DNA of 63,879 bases, the filler included, from Octopus bimaculoides (taxonomy: Eukaryota): NCBI RefSeq assembly GCF_001194135.2. It is 6 parts of 5 records of this genome, joined end to end, with 100 filler letters (N's around TTAATTAATTAA, not from the genome) between each part and the next. Parts side by side here need not be neighbours in the genome. Positions count along the whole stretch, not along the records: positions 29,302 to 42,077 come from NC_068999.1; 5 more parts are not named here. The stretch is one strand, 5' to 3'. Every line of letters starts with the position of its first letter. Position 1 is the stretch's first letter. The notes below the pieces were generated by a model, which saw nothing but the letters and a program-made list of their open reading frames with translations, was not told the DNA's origin and did no database searches. The position numbers were made by a program, and so were the translations under genes. Shown one piece after another: positions 29,302 through 42,121 of this stretch.

Positions 29302-29348
<47 letters not shown>

Positions 29349-32300
29349 GTACATATATATGTGTGTATATATATATATACATACACACACATATATTTAT
29401 ATATGTGTATATGTGTGTGTGTAAGTATGCAAGAGTTTGTTTTTGAGTTGATGTTTATCTCCTATCATTGTTTGATAACCAGTGTTGGTTTCTTTATGTC
29501 CCGTAACTTAGCAGTTCGTCAAAAGAACTTTCTAAAAGTGGCAGATTTAAAAATAAGTCTCGGGGAATTTTTTTTAGTGTCTCATCATGGCTGCAGTCCA
29601 ATGACTGAAACAAGTAAATGATGAAAGATGTTGTTTAATCGATTTCTCAAAGAAAATAAGAACTGGATTAAATTAGTTAAACCGAGAATGGAAGCGAAAT
29701 CGTGCTTTGCTGAGAGAGTACAGTTACCTTCAATATCTATTTTCTAAGGATAAAAATATATTGAATAGATGGCTAAGTGGATATATTATTAGCTTCATCA
29801 GTTGTTACTTCGTTTCAGTTCAAAGATATTTTACCCTATCAGTTTCAGTTTACAGAAGAAACCTAATTTTAAACCCCAAATTAATTGAAATATACTATGT
29901 TGAAGAACAAGTTTAAACTAAACTTCCATTTATATCTGTCAAAACTCATGGTGATCGACATCCATCTCCAAGTTTGTATACATACATTCATACACCACAT
30001 GTATTCGTCTTTTGTTTTCTTTTTGTGAATTCTCCCTATATATTATATATTATATATATCAATCAAAACCACAATCACTTCGAATGAATGAGTTTTTCAA
30101 CGTTTCGGAAGCATTGAATTTATCATTTGTGAATAACCATAGAGAAACTGGAAAATAGTATGGTGGCCAGGAAAGTTGCTATAGTAACTAATCAATAATC
30201 GTTTCGATTATATTAATGTGCATCAATTAAATTAAACGTGAAATTGTAACGGTAGCAAGTTTATATTCTGGTTGCCAAGTAACAATGTTCTTTTTCGCTA
30301 ATTTTGCAGAACACTTTTCATGCTGTCACTGCTGGAAAAATTCTTTATGGCAAATGTTTAGATTTTACTGCTATCCAAGGCTAACGTTGGGAGTTATTTC
30401 ATTGATTAAGTATTTATCAAGTTCAAGATTCAAGTAGCGTGATATAGTTGATAATATTGTTCCTCTTTGTTGACAAAAGACTGCAGTGCTCTTGTATTGA
30501 ATATCTATTTGAAATTATTGTTAATTCTATTTTATCTAGAAGCCTGAAAAATTGTAAAAAAAAAAAAAGGGGGTTTTTAGACTACAGTCAAATCTGATTG
30601 AACAAATCTATAACCAAAAGCATTCCTGTAGTGACTATACCGTCTTTTCGTATATCTAGGACTATATAGTATAATGTATCCTTCTTTTAAGACTGTGGGG
30701 TATGAGGAGGAAATTTGTTTGCTATTTCTAATACGTAAACCTACTACATAGAGACTTTCTATTGGCTCGTTATTATAGAGCCTCTTATCGTTTAGCCTCA
30801 GATCTGCCCTGATTAAGAAGACTCATGACCACTGTCATTCCAACCACGACTAGAGGAATATAAGTCTGCATTATCTATTGCGTTCTTTTTATTTTTGAGT
30901 CAATAAGGGTGAGATATGAGTGAGATTTGGCTGCAGTTTCTAGTTAGTCAAAAGACCACCTGAGAGTTCCCTCATAGACTTATTATTATAATGGCTGTCG
31001 ACAGCGGTGGAGCTGAGTTTTAAAGCAAAAGCTTAATGATTCCTTTATTTTAATATAAAAACAGTTCCAGTTTCGTTTAAATGCTTGTGCTGTTTTTGAT
31101 TAATGGAGATGTCTTAACTAGCACTGAAATCTTGACAGATAAGACTCGAACTAGTTTGAAATTGAATGATGTAGTACGTAATTTAGAAAAAGAAAATCAA
31201 TAGTCATTTATAGTTACATGAAATACAAGTACACTGAACTTTTTCACCTAAAGCAAATGTAAAGCTATGATTTGATGTTTGCAATCGTCGTTTACGACAA
31301 TGTCTCATTCTGAAGGTGACCCAGAAGAGTGTTTTTCAGTTAAGAGAAATAATGTGTGAGGGCATTTAGTGCGTGCGTTTGTGTCTGCCTTCTTCAACCC
31401 TTTCCACTTTCTAAACTCCACATTAACCAGCACCACTCCGCAATTGAATTTCCTGCACACATCTCTCTCTCTCTCTCTCTCTCTTGATCTTATCTACCCG
31501 TGTCTTCACAAACGTTTCATCTCACCCCACTATACTTTCCATACTTTATTTGCTATCTCCTATTTGAAATTCATTCTATTCCGTTGCCTCTGTAACTGTG
31601 ACCCCAAATTTGATACGCAGCTGTCCTAAATAGTCTGCTGCTTCACACAATGTACTTGTCTCCAATTGCTGTCTCTGATCTGTTGACCACGCCTCTGCCC
31701 TTATGTTCCGTATCTACTCTAACACCGACCATCATTTTTTCCCCTTCATCTGCCATCATGACGCCTTAACTTTCCAATGCTCTAGCTTATGGCTCTTTCA
31801 GTTTCTCTAAATGACCAACTTATAACAATCTTCCCTTAAAGCCCTTTTCCTTCGTTCTGCATGAAGGAAACGCAGCCAATTCTCTGTGACTTGGCCTATA
31901 CTCCTATCTTACTTCACGACACTCAACTTGGACCCTTTGTTTGTCCCCGCGGTAATACCTCTCCATTAATCCGAAATATTACTACATTATATGGAACCTA
32001 ACTTCACCTACTATGTCACCGACTTTATGATTTATTGAGTAATTATTGATCAATAATGATAAATATGAACTTGGAGAAACCCATGGAGATTATCAAACCG
32101 CTTTAAAGACCGTCTTTTAGGCACCTGAGTTAATAATATCGGAACACTTCGAGTTTTAGACCGCCAATTTATTTCTCTCCATAACTACCAGTCCCTCTAT
32201 CCGTTAATCTGCAGTCTACACAGCTTACCTATTTAAATTTACTAATCTCTTTGTTTTCCTTAATAACACTGTCTCTTCCAAACACATTCTGCTCGATAAA

Positions 32301-35300
32301 CACCCGCTTCTAGATTTCGCAGACTATCTCCAGCTCCACATACGCATAATGACGCCAGTTGATTGAAATTTTTGGACAGACAATGCAGTTTGGAGTGGAT
32401 TTGGTCTTTAAAGTCAGATGGTGAAAGGAACGGACATGTTTCGGCATTATTAGACCTTCTCAGTGAATTATATTCCACAAAGTTGATATGACTAAGAATC
32501 ATCGACTCAAAGACATAGAGGGAATGCTGTGAAGCTGATTATGAATATTAACAATATGGCTGAGGTAAAATAATTCAGCGTTTGATCATTCTTGAAATTC
32601 ATTAAAATAATTCCCTTAGAGATGATAGCAATCGTTATCTAAATTATTAATTCTGGTAAAAAGAAAGAAGAGAGTACAACACCGAAATGTAATTATTTAA
32701 TTAAAATGGATTATTGAATAAATTTGTTTTTTTACAGAACCATTACGCACACACATGTAATGATTCTGTAAATTACTAATTCATCAATGGAAAACGCTCT
32801 ACTTGGTCACAAACTATAAAACAGAAGAACGAAGGAGAATTTTAAAACTCTTCCCAGTTCGTAATTATCTTTTACATAGCTTCTTACACAGCAATAAAAT
32901 CTGACATTTGAAATTATATGGAGCTTCATGATTTGTTTTGCTTAGGAATCGTTAGAACAAAAATAATCTTAAGAAAAAAGAAAAAAAAAACTAGGTTATT
33001 TAGAAGAAGTATATCCCCCTTCGCCACCGCCACAAAAGTCAACGTGGAGAAGTTTGGAAAATAAAATACTAATTTACATTTGAGTAATGTTTTGATTTTT
33101 TAAAATAGGGGAAACCTCAATTTAAATGCCAAGTCAACAATATTTGGATTCGATTTCAGAAGTGTAAGCGCGTGCACGTGTGTGTGTGTGCGTGTATGTA
33201 CAACACACACACACATACAATATATATATTCAAATTCAAGCATCTACTAAAGTTCGGCACCTACCATAGTTGGCTCAGTCTGTACCTAACTTTCCCAAAG
33301 CGACATATCAGTTACTGAGTAGCCGCTATATGCTCCGCTATGCCTATAAATATAAAGCTTGTAAGGCTGGCGCTTAGCTCAAGCATCAGTAGCTTTATGT
33401 ATTCAAGTTTTATGCATTTACCTCTGGATGGAATCGTTATAGATCGCAGGGACTTGCATCCTATTCTCCTGATAGATATGTAGTCAGCAGCTACAAAGTA
33501 ATTAAGCTAAGATTCGAAATCGAATCTACGTTTTTTCACATTGTCAAACAAATCTTCAACCCATTGTTTTAGCCTTTTTCGCACTCGGAGATAAATATTC
33601 TACTGCACCTACAAGCAAGCTCTGTACACGCAAACAAACCACCCAAGGAAGTTGTATACTTCTTATGTATTGTAACGACTTGCATTATGATTGATAAATA
33701 ATAAATGATTATCTAATCAAATAATTAATTATTTTCCCGTCATTTCTCTGATGCACTATGGCAACAAAATTCACTCGATACAGATATATTAAATTAAATT
33801 ATATTAACAGCACAATAAACGCTACCTTATTTAATCAGTCGAAGTAATAAACCAAAGGAACACATACAAGTATTAAAATAATAACAAAATGAAACGTGTA
33901 AAAATGAAATGTTTTATTTTCTCAACAAATCTCAATGAACAGAAGTACAAGCAAAAACAAATGGAAGAATAAGCAATTTGTGTTTACATGCATTTCACAC
34001 ACATGTATGCATTTCTATGTGTAAAAACATATGCACATCAGTGCATACGCTTGTCCTTTTCCTACCGGTGCAAACTGAATATCTTGCTTGTCACAAACTG
34101 TTAAAACAGAAATGATCAACAAAGAAAGGTGGAACAATTACACAAATCTGTCACAAACAGCAATATTTTGAGAGTCAAATCTAAACAACGACTGTATGTA
34201 CTTAATTTTATGAATGGTGATACTTGAAACCATAGATTTAACACATACGCTGTTGAATAATAATTCTTGAGAACGTGTGTAAATATATGTATGCATGTGT
34301 GTGTGTGTAATGTTAGTTAAAATAAAATCTAAGAAGGTCAAAATCTCAGAGTTCAAATTACGTCGAGCAAGAACGGCTGCCAGTAAAAATGACTGCTTTC
34401 CTGAGATGGTGTAATTGAGATGAGATCTGGAAAACGTGGTCAAAGCAGCATCTGTTTATAAGCAATATAAAAGGTTCTACAATACACGATTTTTATTAAT
34501 AAATAAATAAAATGAATAAATAAATTCAACTTAGTAGTTTGTGGGAAAGACTCGCTTATTTGGTTTTTGCGTGTGAGATCGACTGGGGGTATCGAGTTTA
34601 GTAGACTTTTATATGGTTGATATTGCTGTGGTTTTGATGTTTACCGAACTTTGCCTTCACTGTCATTCACGTATCCTTCTCTTCGTAACTCTAGCTCTTT
34701 CTTACTCTCTCAATCTTCCTTCCTAGATCTGTCTCATTGATGACTACCAAATATACATGAAAGTGTAAGAGAAGGAGTGGGGGTATGTTGCAGAACAGGA
34801 AGCTCTGCTTAAGGCACGATATCATAAGGGTCAAGTGTAGGTGTTAAATAAATGTTACAAGCAGAACAGAAGTCGTGTTAGATCGTACTATAGTGGAATG
34901 TTTAACAACAGCAAGAATCAGAACTTTGCGATGCGATGTAGAAAAGGTGTGGAGATCAAATTTGCAAAATGGCTTCAGAAATCTGAAGCATTCGATTGTA
35001 TTTTAATGGGTATGTTCTTTACTTGTCAGTATTTGTATGTGAGTGTGCGAGTGTGTGTAGGAATGAGGGAAATGAATAGAACTATTTCTTAAATTTAGTT
35101 TATAATTGAACTCCTAAAGATGTTTGCTTTACTTTGAAATAGATAAGTAAGCAAGAAATTTTTTGAAAAAAATATATGTACTCATAATATATATTTACAA
35201 ATAAATTTCACGTTCTATGTGCATGTGTGTGAGTGTGTGTGCATATGGATACTTTATTATCTACGTGAAAATGTTTTAAAGGGCAAAGGCTATGTCAATA

Positions 35301-37067
35301 AATATTTAATTATACTTTGAAATAAAATTCTCAGTATTCAGTTTTAAGTTTAAATGTTACAATTTTGTCTATTTTGTGAGTGATATTGAATCTTATTGAG
35401 TTATGTGATTGCTTTGAATAAATAAATATTTTAAGAGCATATACTGAATATAAGCCAGAAGGGAACATAAACAACCATACAGTAAAAAGGAAACCTTAAC
35501 TCCCCTGTATTTCTTTGAAATTATATAGTATTATTTGTGCGCTGGTAAACCCCCAAAAAATCGATCTTAGAAGACAATTTAAGTAACCTAAACTAGCTGG
35601 CGCCTTCCATATGTCTACATATATTTACCAAACAAATGGTGAACTACGCTATTTGAAGAATAATTTCTACATATCAGAAATGTATGACAACTAAGCTACT
35701 CGATTTTTTTTTTATTGCTTCGAATCCAAACTACACTAAAATAATATTACTTCGAAATTACAGAAGAGAAACAGTCCCATATATATANNNNNNNNNNNNN
35801 NNNNNNNNNNNNNNNNNNNNNNNNNNNNNNNNNNNNNNNNNNNNNNNNNNNNNNNNNNNNNNNNNNNNNNNNNNNNNNNNNNNNNNNNNNNNNNNNNNNN
35901 NNNNNNNNNNNNNNNNNNNNNNNNNNNNNNNNNNNNNNNNNNNNNNNNNNNNNNNNNNNNNNNNNNNNNNNNNNNNNNNNNNNNNNNNNNNNNNNNNNNN
36001 NNNNNNNNNNNNNNNNNNNNNNNNNNNNNNNNNNNNNNNNNNNNNNNNNNNNNNNNNNNNNNNNNNNNNNNNNNNNNNNNNNNNNNNNNNNNNNNNNNNN
36101 NNNNNNNNNNNNNNNNNNNNNNNNNNNNNNNNNNNNNNNNNNNNNNNNNNNNNNNNNNNNNNNNNNNNNNNNNNNNNNNNNNNNNNNNNNNNNNNNNNNN
36201 NNNNNNNNNNNNNNNNNNNNNNNNNNNNNNNNNNNNNNNNNNNNNNNNNNNNNNNNNNNNNNNNNNNNNNNNNNNNNNNNNNNNNNNNNNNNNNNNNNNN
36301 NNNNNNNNNNNNNNNNNNNNNNNNNNNNNNNNNNNNNNNNNNNNNNNNNNNNNNNNNNNNNNNNNNNNNNNNNNNNNNNNNNNNNNNNNNNNNNNNNNNN
36401 NNNNNNNNNNNNNNNNNNNNNNNNNNNNNNNNNNNNNNNNNNNNNNNNNNNNNNNNNNNNNNNNNNNNNNNNNNNNNNNNNNNNNNNNNNNNNNNNNNNN
36501 ATATATATATGTTCATTAAGAAATAGAGGATCTATACGGATTCTATTTGCAAAAGTTTGGTTTTCTAACAAGATTCCATGTCATGATGGAAATTTATTTG
36601 TATTGTCTTCCCTTGGATGCTAAGTAGTGTGGGCTATTTTACACGAAGTATGAAAATATATATTTCTCTGACTCAAAGTGAGTTGGGGAAGCAAATATGA
36701 TTTGTATCACTCACACCATACACACGCATATATACATATAGATGTTAATACAAAGACAACTTTATATACATAACTTAATGTTGCGTACTTTCACATTACA
36801 TAACTACACAAATATTAGTGGTTGCAGATAAGCTCAAACGAAAGAATTCCTTATACGATTGTACCATTTTGTTTGGACGAACAGGGAAAACTCCAGGGAT
36901 CTATTTTCTTCATGTCTACACACATAATTGTGTGTGTATGTCTGTGTGTGTCTAATTTGGCTCATTCACGGAAGTTTTGCAAAGTCTGTGGCCATTTCTT
37001 TTCTGAGACAATTTCCCAAGCTGCTGGCGGCAACATTTTTGCGTTGGTTCTGGTGGAATTTAGCTTT

Positions 37068-37195
37068 TTAAAACATTGCGTATCTTGCTGTAGTTGAGTT
37101 CTTTTGGGCTTTCGTCATGATTTGAACCAGGAAGCTGGACAAACTGCGTTTACGCCTTTGAACCATGTTGGATATGTTGTCCAAGTCGCTGGCAA
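37068..37195 (-). CDS. Probable terminal coding exon of the putative prepropeptide
   Basis: Acceptor ttttttattttag at 37196, with a GC-richer island downstream. Phase 1 reads (V)ASDLDNISNMVQRRKR-SLSSFLVQIMTKAQKNSTTARYAMF*. The join to 39850 is inferred from matching phase only. Confidence 0.5.
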
Positions 37196-38319
37196 CTAAA
37201 ATAAAAAATATATATATATATGATGGCGTGATAATTAAAGAGCAAAAGTAAGAAAGTAACATCAATATATAGAAAAATAGAAAAGTCAGATAGAAATATT
37301 TTGCATATGCACAAGATTACATATTTATAAGGTGATAAGAGTTTTAGTAAAGTGAAAAAAAAATTACATTAACGAGGAATAAAAAAAAAAGCAACAGCAA
37401 TGGAGTCGAGGCCAGATTACTTAATTCACGTTGTTTATGTACCCGAGAAATCATGAATAAATTAAATTAAATCAAGAGTATACGACCAATTTCTTGAATT
37501 TCCTTATCAGAAATAGTTAAATAGTAATTAGCTTTATTGATTTCAGGATCAGGTAAAAGAGTTCGAATCTGTTCAAGAAAAATTCGAAATGCAAGTGAAA
37601 TACCTATAGCCAAAAATATTAAATTATTTGAAGAGTCAGCTGGTCGAGGGTGTTCCGCAGATTTGGGCAAAAGAAAAAATTCGTTCACATTTTATCACAG
37701 TAATCGATCTGCTTAGCAATGGACACTGATTTAATAATTTATCTCTGAACAAATGAAGTAAATCGTTTCTTCGTATTAGATAGTTCTCTCCGCATATTAG
37801 AATAAAAATTTAGGCATATACTTTAAAGGATGGTTATTAACATTAAGCCGAATTAATTTTGACCGACATATAGCGGCTATTTCTGTTCCAACAACAGCCT
37901 TGTAATGTGTCTATTTTTAACGGTTTTGTTCACTTTCCTGTCAATAAGTATCGTGTCTAGATGAAGCTCACCTCCGGGCAAAGGTTCAACACTTTGCATC
38001 CCTTCACTTGAATTGTGTCACTGGAAAACCATTCAACTTTCAATGACCCAAACAACTTAATGTAAATAGGTGCTACACACAGTTTCTGCTCATTACTGTT
38101 AGCAAACGAATCACAATTTAACTGACGATTATTTCATCCGCTTGTTCTGTTAATTCCAAATCCACATAGATTTGAGAGGAAGGATTAATTTTACAGTGTG
38201 TAGCGGACAGATTTAATTTGTTAATTTTATAGATTGATTGAAAAATCTGCCGAAATGCTGTATTCATCACACTTACAAAAATTCCGAATTTTTTTGTTTC
38301 AGTTCAATAAGAAACAAAG

Positions 38320-39038
38320 AGACGGGATTTGAAAGCGAATCGTTCAGATACTGGAAGAAATGCCGCTAAGCATTTCGTCCGATGCACTCGCCACCATGAA
38401 TGAATACATAAATAAATTTCTACTATAGGCACAATGCCTGAAATTTCGAGGGTCAGGGCTAGTCGAGTGCATAGACTCCAGTGCTCAACTGGTACTTATT
38501 TCATCAACCCCATAACGGTGAAAGGCAAAGTCGATCTTGGCGGAACTTAGAGCATAAAGAGCTGGAATGACTACATAAATAATCTTTTCTACTATAGGCA
38601 CAAACCTGAAATTTTGGGGGAGGGGGCTTATCGATTACAGAGACCCCAGTACTCAACTGGTACTTTTTTGTCGACCCCGAAAAAATGAAAGGTAAAATCG
38701 ATCTAGGAGGAATTTGAATTTAGAACATAAGGGCGGACGAAATGTTGCTAAGCACTTTGTCCGGCACGATAACAATTCTACCAGCTCGCCACCTTGACTA
38801 CATAAATAATAATGATTTCAAATGTTGGTACAAGGCCAACAGTTTCGGGGAAGGGTGTAAGTCGATTACATAAACCCCCGTGCTCAATTGATATTTATTT
38901 TATCGACCCAGAAAGGATGAAAAGTAATGTCGGCATCGGAGGAATTTGAACTCAGAAAGTAGACAGACGAAATGCCGATAAGCATTTTGTCCGGCGTGGT
39001 AACGATTCTACTAGCTCGCCACCTTGAGTACATAAATA
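38320..39038 (-). mobile_element. Array of SINE family B copies separated by TGANTACATAAATA
   Basis: Motif at 38401, 38568, 38795 and 39025, with a SINE copy between each pair. Confidence 0.8.
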
Positions 39039-39849
39039 GTAACGATCATAGGTATAACAGTAATATATCTTTGAATGGTTGTTGCAAGGAGGAAATAAAT
39101 AAGTTATGATTTTTATAGTGTATCCAAAAACATAAGATTAGTAGCTAAAGAATATTTGGAATAGAAACTCTGCCATGGATTTAATTTTCCGAGAATTAAC
39201 TACCAAATCAGCGTTTATGGAAAGATTTTGTTTTCCTTGGTCTTATGATCTGGATTTACAGAAAAGTAAGAAATTAGTTCTAATGTTTATGACTGTATTG
39301 AGTTAATAGCGATGCTAACTAAGAACCATACAAGCGTGATGGACCTGGTTTAATAGATAATTATTGTCACAGTAGACTCGCTATATAATGATTTTTTTAA
39401 ATCATTGCAAGGTTCATATTCACAAAGAAGACAGCGATGGGTGATTTAATCGATTGCAACATCTTCCTGTTGCTATGCTATTGACCCTGGATAGATAAAG
39501 AGTGAATACCTTCAATGATCTTTGAATAAACTCCAAATATGGAAGCAAAACTATCCATATTTCAAATACAGTCACACCTCATCTTATGTCGTTTCGAATT
39601 TTGTCTTTTTCGACTTTACGTCTTTTGTTTTTTAGATATTAAAAATGATTATCTTATAAAAATGCAGTATTGCTGGTAACTTATTTTATTGATTACAAGG
39701 AGGTAAAAGACAAATCAACCACGACGATATTGAGATCTGTGATGTTGCGAGACGAAATTTAATACAGCTAGATATTTTAACTAATCTATTATTGTTTTTG
39801 TTAGCTCCTCGACTTTCTATAGACAATGAGGATTCTTCAAAGAACTTAC

Positions 39850-39991
39850 CATCAGCTAATTTTTTCAAATCTTCGATACTGATGTAGTGTGTTACGGTAT
39901 TACCTTTGGTGTCATCTAGGTAGGAAGGTGCAGCCAGTACGAAGCCCATGGTGGAGCATGTAACGAGGAGGATGAAAACAAGGCGAGACAT
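39850..39991 (-). CDS. Signal-peptide exon of a putative secreted prepropeptide
   Basis: Strong acceptor ttgtttctttctttgcag at 40001, ATG at 39991, MSRLVFILLVTCSTMGFVLA-APSYLDDTKGNTVTHYISIEDLKKLAD, then donor GATG|gtaagt at 39850/39849 (phase 1). Confidence 0.65.
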
Positions 39992-40261
39992 AGTTGAAAT
40001 CTGCAAAGAAAGAAACAAATGAATAATAATATCTTATTTTTCATTTAATACAATATTGCAAAGATGGATGTTCTTATGTTCATGCTTCCCAAAGCATTAG
40101 CAGCGAAAGTAAACTGAAATGGTTTCAAACTGAAGCTCGAAACTCCAGTCGAAATTACAAATTCCGACAAAAGTAATTTCAAAATTACGTAATAAACGAA
40201 AGTAGAGTGAAATAGTTCTCTTGTGAGGATCGAATCCGTCTTGAGACGCTTTTACGCGATC

Positions 40262-40572
40262 ACCTTAATATTGGTTTCAAATTTTGGCACAAGGCCAGTA
40301 ATTTTAGGGGTGGGGTAAATCGATTACATCGATCCCAGTGTTCGACTGGTATTTTTTTATCGACCCCGAAAGAATAAAAAAAAAACAAAGTTAACCTCTG
40401 CAGAATTTGAACTCGGAACCTAAAGACGGCTGAAATGCCGCCAGACATTTCGCGCGGCGTGCTAACGATTCTGCCAGTTCACCGCCTTAAATTATCTCAA
40501 TATTGTGTTTCGTATATAAGCATAAAAGCAGTGACATTGCCGTGTGAACAGCGATCTTATACTTGCTGAAGT

Positions 40573-40607
<35 letters not shown>

Positions 40608-40617
40608 NNNNNNNNNN

Positions 40618-40660
<43 letters not shown>

Positions 40661-41177
40661 CTTACAAATAAAGTCAAGTACCTTCCTTTTCAGTTTTATG
40701 GTGGGTAGTTCTACAAATTCCTCATTTAGAGTTTTTACATGTACCTAATGTTTATAGGGTAGGAAGTGAGATTACATGATATTCATATATTTCTCCTGGA
40801 CATTCTCCAAGATCTTGGTGAGGCTTAATCAGAGCAAGGAAGGTCGGAGAGGAAAGTAATTCGACTGCATCGAACCCATTACATTCCTGGTGTTTATTTC
40901 ATCGACCTCGAAAAGATGAAAGGCAAAATTGACCTTAGAAAAAACCCCACGAACTTTGAAAATAATCACGAACAGGGCCAGCAATTTTAGGGGAGTGGTA
41001 AATAGGTTACATCGACCACAGTAATCGACTGATACTTATGTTATCGACCTCGAAGAGATGAAAGGCAGAGTGGACCTCGGCGGAATTTAAACTCAGAACG
41101 TGAAGGCAGACGAAATCCCGCCAAGCATTTTGCTTTGCATGCTAACGATTCTGCCAGTTCACCGCCTTCACGAACAG
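40262..41177 (-). mobile_element. Cluster of SINE family B copies (about 40262-40490, 40840-40940, 40966-41177)
   Basis: Family B core and head. The last copy is flanked by a direct repeat tcacgaacag (40966-40975, 41168-41177). Confidence 0.8.
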
Positions 41178-41771
41178 AAATAATAGTTATTAAGTTTACA
41201 ATTTACGACCACGGTTTACTCTGCATCATGAATCAGTCTTTAGTAAAAGCTGATCTTCTTGCTTCTTAGCTATATTTTATAACAGAATCATAATGAGCCT
41301 GCTTCAGTAGAATGGCAATGATAATGTTTTTACAACTATTAAACAATATAAAGTGGCTCAAATACTTTTGAATTCTCTAAGTGTGCAAACTGGAATAATA
41401 AAGATTTCCAGATGATGATTGTGCACATCAGTGTCTGAGCAAATAATGAAACATTTTTATTGAGTCAATGATATTTTCTTTTAACTTTCGTAACTCTTAA
41501 TCGATTGCTGAATCGTTATCGAAAACTTCGACATTATGTGGCACAAGAACAAGGTAAAAGGTAAGCCAGCTGAGCCCATCTTTCATGATGTATATTTTTC
41601 TATTATACTTTTGGCATCTATTTAAGGAAGTAAAATGGTGGCAACAATCCAGGTATTTACAGGTTCAACAAGGTTGGATGCTGCTAGGATGCAAGTCTAA
41701 CATTTCCACGCGTGCGCGTGCGAGCTGCTTAGGAGAATGTCAGAGGAGAAAGAAAGTCGGATTGTAGATCC

Positions 41772-42011
41772 TTATTTCTTTATTGCCCACAAGGGGCTAA
41801 ACATAGAGGGGACAAACAAGGACTGACAAAGGAATTAAGTCGATTACATCGACCCAGTGCGTAACTGGTATTTTATTTATCGACCCGAAAGGATGAAAGG
41901 CAAAGTCGACCTCGGCGGAATTTGAACTCAGAACGTAGCGGTAGACGAAATACCGCTAAGCATTTCGCCCGGCATGCTAACGATTCTGCCAGCTCGCCGC
42001 CTTAATGTGTA
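41772..42011 (-). mobile_element. Young full-length SINE family B with 12-bp target-site duplication
   Basis: Flanked by gattgtagatcc at 41760-41771 and 42012-42023. tRNA-like head ggcggcgagctggcagaatcg...gagttcaaattcc; tail gggcaataaagaaataag. Confidence 0.9.
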
Positions 42012-42121
42012 GATTGTAGATCCGCGACACAATGAAGTTATAAAATGCCAAAGATGTTAATGATTCAATGCAAAGGGNNNNNNNNNNNNNNNNNNNNNNN
42101 NNNNNNNNNNNNNNNNNNNNN

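Follow-up and report, generated by a model that had tools for sequence, protein, structure and literature searches.

What does a short two-exon reading frame in the genome of Octopus bimaculoides encode, a member of a known hormone family or a peptide precursor peculiar to cephalopods? The frame lies on the minus strand of the stretch of DNA that we analysed (the window, 63,879 nucleotides including filler; coordinates are positions along the whole window unless another sequence is named), within a piece at 29302-42077 that is 100% identical to O. bimaculoides chromosome CM046619.1 (GCA_001194135.2). An initial annotation, made from the sequence, had described it as an unannotated small secreted prepropeptide, either a divergent relative of the egg-laying hormone (ELH)/CRF family or a lineage-specific peptide hormone precursor. 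We favor the reading that this is a real, expressed, single-copy coleoid gene for a small secreted prepropeptide, belonging to a family without detectable non-cephalopod relatives and having a signaling peptide as its most likely role, and we assign this reading a probability of about 0.6.

The coding segment of the ATG exon is 142 nt long and ends ...GCTGATG/GTAAGT, with a phase-1 donor after 39850, and the second exon follows the acceptor TTTTAG/TTGCC before 37195. Joined, the two coding exons specify an 89-amino-acid (aa) precursor, MSRLVFILLVTCSTMGFVLA / APSYLDDTKGNTVTHYISIEDLKKLADVASDLDNISNMVQ / RRKR / SLSSFLVQIMTKAQKNSTTARYAMF, in which the successive segments are a signal region, an N-peptide, a tetrabasic site and a C-peptide. 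The initial annotation had proposed this model in all its parts (acceptor, ATG, phase-1 GTAAG donor, intron of ~2.65 kb, acceptor at 37195, RRKR, 89 aa and a 25-aa peptide), and it proved correct to the base.

Orthologues were found in a second octopod genus and in a cuttlefish. When 1.84 billion representative proteins were searched exhaustively with HMMER, matches were restricted to cephalopods apart from one dog ankyrin protein (E = 5.7e-4), which we rejected as a chance match; the sole addition from a profile search was a genomic Sepia contig whose exon 1 continues into intronic sequence, and neither search found relatives outside cephalopods. The Argonauta hians protein GAB1605380.1 is 63% identical, and the Sepia esculenta orthologue, with 35% identity, is an 86-aa open reading frame (ORF) on 47 RNA-type contigs. 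Two of the sequencing runs carrying the Sepia ORF are named in a larval transcriptome paper on this species (PMC10571815), and the transcript was well assembled from whole larvae in at least 24 runs. The same 91-aa ORF was present in all 10 of the Sepia mRNA contigs examined. On the Sepia mRNA contig L002, a 226-239-aa “gene” has also been called at 312-1031, in the 3' untranslated region (UTR) and overlapping the end of the real ORF; we discarded it as an artefact, as it has internal stops in the standard code and a length that varies among contigs.

The exon boundaries are conserved along with the protein. When the Sepia genomic contig L013 was compared with L002, the two diverged exactly at ...TTTGCAG/ATTTCTAAAAATG and at ...AGCAAAG/GTGAGC, which shows directly that splicing occurs at both sites and that the 5' UTR includes a separate exon. 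In Argonauta, the acceptor context of the ATG exon (ccag/AACTCAAACATG) and its donor (AATG/GTAAGT) are likewise the same, and exon 2, beyond an intron of 3,883 nt, is read in the same phase. Intron position and phase are common to O. bimaculoides, Octopus vulgaris, Argonauta and Sepia, and in Argonauta and Sepia a frame continued past the donor runs into stops within a few codons, so that the conserved frame is the spliced one only. The initial annotation had named three observations that would speak against its gene model, namely exons that no transcript joins, use of the acceptor at 37195 in another phase, and a signal-peptide exon not conserved in related species. Instead, spliced Sepia mRNA uses both sites and the octopus annotations agree, the acceptor has the same phase in O. 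vulgaris, Argonauta and Sepia, and the signal-peptide exon is conserved in related species; none of the three told against the model.

A comparison of the two Octopus species gave a measure of constraint at close range. The window and the O. vulgaris locus (L001) are collinear, and aligned non-coding positions are 93.8% identical with many indels. The 270 coding nucleotides differ by 5 substitutions and no indels, compared with 6.2% substitutions and many indels in the introns (binomial P = 6e-4 for so few changes at the intron rate). Four of the five coding substitutions are synonymous, giving a ratio of nonsynonymous to synonymous rates (dN/dS) of 0.07, and the splice signals are identical, as are the position and phase of the intron, which is 3,106 nt long in O. 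vulgaris and 2,654 nt in O. bimaculoides. Between Octopus and Argonauta the overall dN/dS was 0.14, with dS saturated. No paralogue was found in ~40 kb of either Octopus locus, in the window piece or in the Argonauta locus.

These data bear on whether the frame is a chance ORF in a non-coding transcript rather than a functional protein-coding gene. The ORF is short, it has no domain matches, and the protein collection searched holds no octopus transcript-derived proteins, all of which would fit a chance frame. However, the frame, its length, the intron phase, the signal peptide and the string RRKRSLSS are kept between octopods and Sepia, dN/dS is 0.14, and the exons lack the indels that are many in the introns. 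We consider the probability of a chance ORF to be negligible, cross-species conservation of the sequence appearing effectively to refute it.

The gene is not new to public records, as the initial annotation had supposed, but is already annotated there and only functionally uncharacterized. The identical 89-aa protein is UniRef entry A0A0L8HBJ6, and the NCBI Gnomon model XP_014773698.1 (LOC106871639, on CM046619.1 within 22.64-22.68 Mb), with 188 aa, contains both of these coding exons together with others upstream. In O. vulgaris, CAI9736542.1 is an 89-aa protein with one substitution (F6L), and a 112-aa isoform is also annotated. The name “RxLR effector protein” attached to A0A0L8HBJ6 is an automatic label without basis, since RxLR effectors belong to oomycetes and the protein has no Pfam domain match. 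No paper mentioning the protein was found when the literature was searched by accession, LOC identifier and sequence. Our results correct two misleading labels, the effector name and the 188-aa model with its non-conserved N-terminal extension.

We examined which methionine is the start. The N-terminal extensions of the longer octopus models differ between O. bimaculoides and O. vulgaris and would place the hydrophobic segment internally. The Sepia 5' UTR contains an in-frame stop and no upstream ATG, and its first ATG is that of the MSR start; this indicates that translation begins at the conserved MSR methionine, the extensions being most reasonably taken as 5' UTR. Both public octopus models join an upstream exon, which lies outside the piece as a 5'-UTR exon, to the acceptor at 40001. 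The 99-aa extension of XP_014773698.1 (L015 12871-13008 and 21546-21698, outside the piece) has no conserved counterpart in either O. vulgaris or Sepia, and the first coding exon of this model adjoins a copy of a SINE (short interspersed nuclear element) at L015 13006-13236. Just within its annotated second coding exon is a TATAAAAAG box, which is similar to TATAAAAG at the 5' end of the Sepia contig L004 and suggests that the true octopus transcript starts at this box.

The anatomy of the precursor is uniform across species, with a signal region of 20-21 aa, an N-peptide of 40, the RRKR site of 4 and a C-peptide of 25-26. The signal region has a basic n-region (R3) and a hydrophobic core of ~15 residues with a mean Kyte-Doolittle value of 2.5-3.4; residues -3/-1 are V-x-A/S in all species, followed by an invariant Ala-Pro. 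A cleavable N-terminal signal peptide is thus predicted by rule-based assessment, and the hydrophobic segment of ~20 aa recognized in the initial annotation is present as described, with small residues at -3/-1 and conservation across species. The invariant alignment positions are Ala-Pro, D41, K44, L45, L52, N54, M58, R61-R-K-R-S-L-S-S68, S81-T-T83 and Y86. RRKR followed by SLSS is invariant among orthologues that are only ~35% identical. The N-peptide is amphipathic over its second half in every species, with a hydrophobic moment there of 0.45-0.55 that is exceeded by only 2-5% of shuffles.

Is the precursor cut at RRKR at all? In an AlphaFold2 (AF2) prediction from the four-sequence alignment, residues 39-80 formed a single helix running through RRKR (predicted local distance difference test 86-92, predicted template modeling score 0.37), and conservation peaks on both flanks of the site, as might be seen if the product were an intact helical secreted protein of ~69 aa, or one anchored by an uncleaved signal, in which RRKR is a basic patch. 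We regard this as unlikely. A secretory protein with an invariant R-R-K-R before Ser-Leu presents the canonical furin substrate, AF2 with four sequences favors helices generically, and a Foldseek search of the PDB returned nothing at E < 1 and thus no helical-protein relative. A Pfam scan (E <= 10) gave no domain match.

Constraint differs between the segments on either side of the site. Between Octopus and Argonauta, dN/dS was lower in the N-peptide (0.05) than in RRKR and the C-peptide taken together (0.27), which shows the N-peptide to be more than a spacer. The helix before the cut and the SLSS and STT-x-Y positions after it appear, from their conservation, to be functionally constrained; constraint on both sides of RRKR suggests that both products, or cleavage itself, matter.

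An alternative is a convertase-processed secreted peptide of a non-hormonal kind, such as a host-defense peptide (an acidic propiece with a cationic C-peptide) or a glandular or venom component. The N-peptide has a net charge of -4 to -7 in octopods and is followed by a C-peptide of +3 to +5, an arrangement known from many antimicrobial-peptide precursors; RRKR/S is optimal for furin, which is constitutive and ubiquitous, and the transcript is robust in whole Sepia larvae, in the 24 or more runs mentioned above. However, across the species the C-peptide charge was +3, +5 and +1, the last in Sepia, its hydrophobic moment was within the range of shuffles in all of them, and the propiece is constrained at least as strongly as the C-peptide. 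Low amphipathicity and the +1 net charge in Sepia make an antimicrobial reading weak. A non-hormonal role is also made less plausible by the single copy without tandem arrays, by the presence of the gene in decapodiforms and by the lack of the tachykinin/neurotensin motifs of the octopod venom family SF1. We consider a non-hormonal peptide improbable, although a real contender.

The more specific proposal of the initial annotation was kinship with ELH and CRF. ELH/DH44 was absent from every cephalopod in a broad survey, and a loss has been proposed (PMC6425005). The slot is therefore open, and the gene could be the “missing” cephalopod ELH/DH44/CRF-type hormone, diverged past profile detection, with the helix that starts at ISIEDLKKLAD as the homologue of the ELH N-terminus; such a counterpart, if true, would overturn the proposed cephalopod loss of an ancient bilaterian hormone system. 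In Smith-Waterman comparison the Octopus sequence scored 38 against Aplysia califin-C, compared with 21.5 +/- 4.1 for shuffles, 0.5% of which reached 38. The AF2-predicted helix is ~42 residues long. In Aplysia, moreover, the ELH prohormone is first cut at a tetrabasic RRKR site. A single CRHR-like gene has been reported “in molluscs”, without Octopus being stated (PMC7200681).

Nevertheless, apart from that one nominal pair, tests of this proposal were negative. The Pfam scan at E <= 10 found neither PF02323 nor PF00473. For profile comparison we used 11 real ELH/CDCH/DH44/CRH sequences (Lymnaea ovulation hormone, Aplysia califin-C, insect diuretic hormones and vertebrate CRH); when this set was compared with the cephalopod family in hhalign, the probability was 0.4%, over an unrelated 12-residue stretch. 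BLASTP against califin-C produced no alignment at E <= 100. The Octopus signal against califin-C was the only nominal one among 15 comparisons made post hoc and falls off in Argonauta (5%) and Sepia (22%), and shuffle tests against CDCH, DH44 and CRH gave no signal. The motif itself is not conserved, ISIEDLKK of Octopus corresponding to ITVEDLEK in Argonauta and MTPNDMDK in Sepia, and Ser, the sole invariant column of the ELH/CRF alignment, is S/T/T in Octopus, Argonauta and Sepia. No processing site precedes ISIEDL in any species; the residues before it are ...NTVTHY, with no basic residue, the motif begins 16 residues past the predicted signal cut, and the conserved intron splits it. A Gly-basic amidation signal is also missing, the two peptides ending ...NMVQ-RRKR and ...AMF-stop with no Gly in Octopus, Argonauta or Sepia, as the initial annotation had pointed out for the C-terminus.

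Taken together, the features that define membership of the ELH/CRF/DH44 group (profile match, amidation Gly, N-terminal processing site and conserved motif) were looked for and each was lacking, and we reject membership. A slim chance is retained because tests of this kind can miss peptides that are very short and evolve fast. The ELH-like strings noted initially are present in the sequence, but they resemble ELH only weakly in statistical terms, and only in Octopus. The initial interpretation was thus half right: the relationship to ELH/CRF failed on Pfam, hhalign, BLASTP and motif conservation, whereas the alternative of a lineage-specific secreted precursor is borne out by the signal peptide, the invariant RRKR, purifying selection, splicing in Sepia and cephalopod-only matches.

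We conclude that the gene most likely encodes the precursor of an orphan intercellular signaling peptide, neuropeptide- or peptide-hormone-like. In the mechanism that we propose, the N-terminal signal peptide would direct co-translational entry into the endoplasmic reticulum and be removed before Ala21-Pro22. A convertase of the furin or prohormone convertase (PC) type would cut after R61-R-K-R64 in the secretory pathway, which we infer because R-X-K/R-R followed by Ser-Leu is a canonical substrate, and a carboxypeptidase would remove the basic residues. Two products are predicted. The acidic one, APSY...NMVQ, has 40 aa (monoisotopic M 4393.16), may be N-glycosylated at NIS, and would form an amphipathic helix in its C-terminal half; the basic one, SLSS...AMF, has 25 aa (M 2822.45), is non-amidated and may be glycosylated at NST/STT. 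The corresponding masses predicted for S. esculenta are 4442.24 and 3173.56.

Several points weigh against a processed signaling peptide. The helix predicted by AF2 is continuous through RRKR and compatible with an uncleaved helical protein. Several common hallmarks of neuropeptides are wanting, since the precursor contains neither an amidation signal nor repeated peptides nor cysteines. Transcript-derived copies in the protein collection searched come from Sepia only, none being from octopus, and the Sepia transcripts are from whole larvae and thus uninformative on neural or endocrine specificity. Finally, both cleavage and the signaling role are deduced from sequence. If the product is not a signaling peptide, the gene would encode an ordinary orphan secreted protein.

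A bolder form of the signaling reading is that the gene founded a coleoid-specific peptide-hormone or neuropeptide family, a lineage-specific peptidergic innovation; we hold this tentatively, at somewhat less than even odds. A survey of cephalopods reported a complex brain without new peptide families, with the proviso that lineage-specific families might have been missed (PMC6425005), and a coleoid peptide family, if true, would be an innovation such as surveys based on homology said they had not found (PMC6425005). The cataloguing of cephalopod neuropeptides has relied mainly on homology. The gene is a concrete and testable candidate for a missed family, because it has been under purifying selection since before the octopod/cuttlefish split and has no relatives elsewhere. 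It offers two defined peptide products for mass spectrometry and orphan-receptor tests.

The coordinates of the gene are collected in Table 1.

Table 1. Features of the prepropeptide gene in window coordinates, in the order of transcription
Feature	Position	Strand	Basis
Polypyrimidine tract and CAG acceptor of the ATG exon	40001..40020	-	Sequence; same acceptor in O. vulgaris and Argonauta; Sepia mRNA/genomic divergence at AG
5' UTR, last 9 nt (ATTTCAACT), with A at -3 of the ATG	39992..40000	-	Sequence
ATG (39991-39989) and predicted 20-aa signal peptide MSRLVFILLVTCSTMGFVLA, predicted cut before Ala-Pro	39932..39991	-	Hydrophobic core; -3/-1 residues
Codons 21-47 and base 1 of codon 48, N-terminal part of the 40-aa acidic peptide (APSYLDDTKGNTVTHYISIEDLKKLAD)	39850..39931	-	Translation, alignment
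Phase-1 intron, 2,654 nt, GTAAGT...TTTTAG	37196..39849	-	Sequence; position and phase as in three other species
Remainder of the 40-aa N-peptide (VASDLDNISNMVQ), part of the conserved amphipathic helix	37158..37195	-	Alignment, hydrophobic moment, AF2
Tetrabasic RRKR, putative furin/convertase site, residues 61-64	37146..37157	-	Invariant in Octopus, Argonauta and Sepia
Basic 25-aa C-terminal peptide SLSSFLVQIMTKAQKNSTTARYAMF, free C-terminus	37071..37145	-	Translation, alignment
TAA stop	37068..37070	-	Translation
3' UTR, start	36860..37067	-	96-98% identity with O. vulgaris vs 93.8% background

The 3' UTR of the Sepia mRNA is 2.4 kb long, and the octopus 3' UTR may extend into an assembly gap at 35788-36500 (713 N). 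A second gap, at 40608-40617 (10 N), lies between (TA)n and (GA)n microsatellites at ~40560-40660. Downstream of the gene, 31302-32301 is strongly C-rich/T-rich (GC skew -0.37, AT skew -0.17), with CT-type simple repeats.

Within the intron, two patches are highly conserved between the Octopus species, 38370-38498 (99%) and 37414-37608 (97%), against the 93.8% background; these could be regulatory elements or due to chance. The O. vulgaris intron has ~420 nt of additional sequence (L001 27888-28311) at window position ~39560. A SINE-like dispersed repeat (GGTGGCGAGC...GACGAAATGC...) has copies at 38398-39070, 40262-40510, 40856-41190 and 41836-42025; three copies are inside the intron of the gene at ~38398-39070, the others are upstream, and dozens occur in the O. 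vulgaris locus. Scans of the piece found no tRNA (ARAGORN) or RNA-family (Rfam) match, either for this repeat or elsewhere in the piece.

The precursor can be compared with several known systems. With ELH/CDCH/DH44/CRF it shares a secreted precursor and a helical peptide region of ~40 residues, and in Octopus an ISIxDLK-like string recalls the N-terminus of ELH/califin, but gastropod ELH precursors are far longer than 89 aa. The octopod venom family SF1 (tachykinin/octotensin precursors) likewise consists of small, cysteine-free, cephalopod-specific secreted precursors with basic sites and short peptides (bioRxiv 10.64898/2026.02.02.703354). SF1 is octopodiform-only, forms tandem arrays with FABP and NR-GRF on the flanks, and yields FxGLM or RRPYIL peptides (bioRxiv 10.64898/2026.02.02.703354); membership is ruled out by the presence of our gene in Sepia, its single copy within 40 kb and the absence of tachykinin, neurotensin or myosuppressin-like motifs. 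Aplysia sensorin-A (P29233) is a basic peptide of ~22-25 aa with ...ARY...MF near its C-terminus, a resemblance to the octopus C-peptide that is missing in Sepia; sensorin is also amidated. With a sensorin sequence matched to the published m/z of 2770.5, a relationship was rejected, as alignment scores were not above shuffles and the best alignments fail to pair the C-terminal residues.

Small single-site neuropeptide and prohormone precursors in general, with the architecture of the PDF/cerebrin type, offer a further comparison. There is no sequence similarity to any named family, the HMMER matches being in cephalopods only, and in our gene the C-peptide is non-amidated, the associated peptide is conserved like the terminal one, and the site is tetrabasic and furin-type rather than a plain KR. 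In their overall plan, however, the two are alike, each having ~90 aa, a signal peptide, a single basic site that is conserved and, as its last segment, a short C-terminal peptide, under purifying selection.

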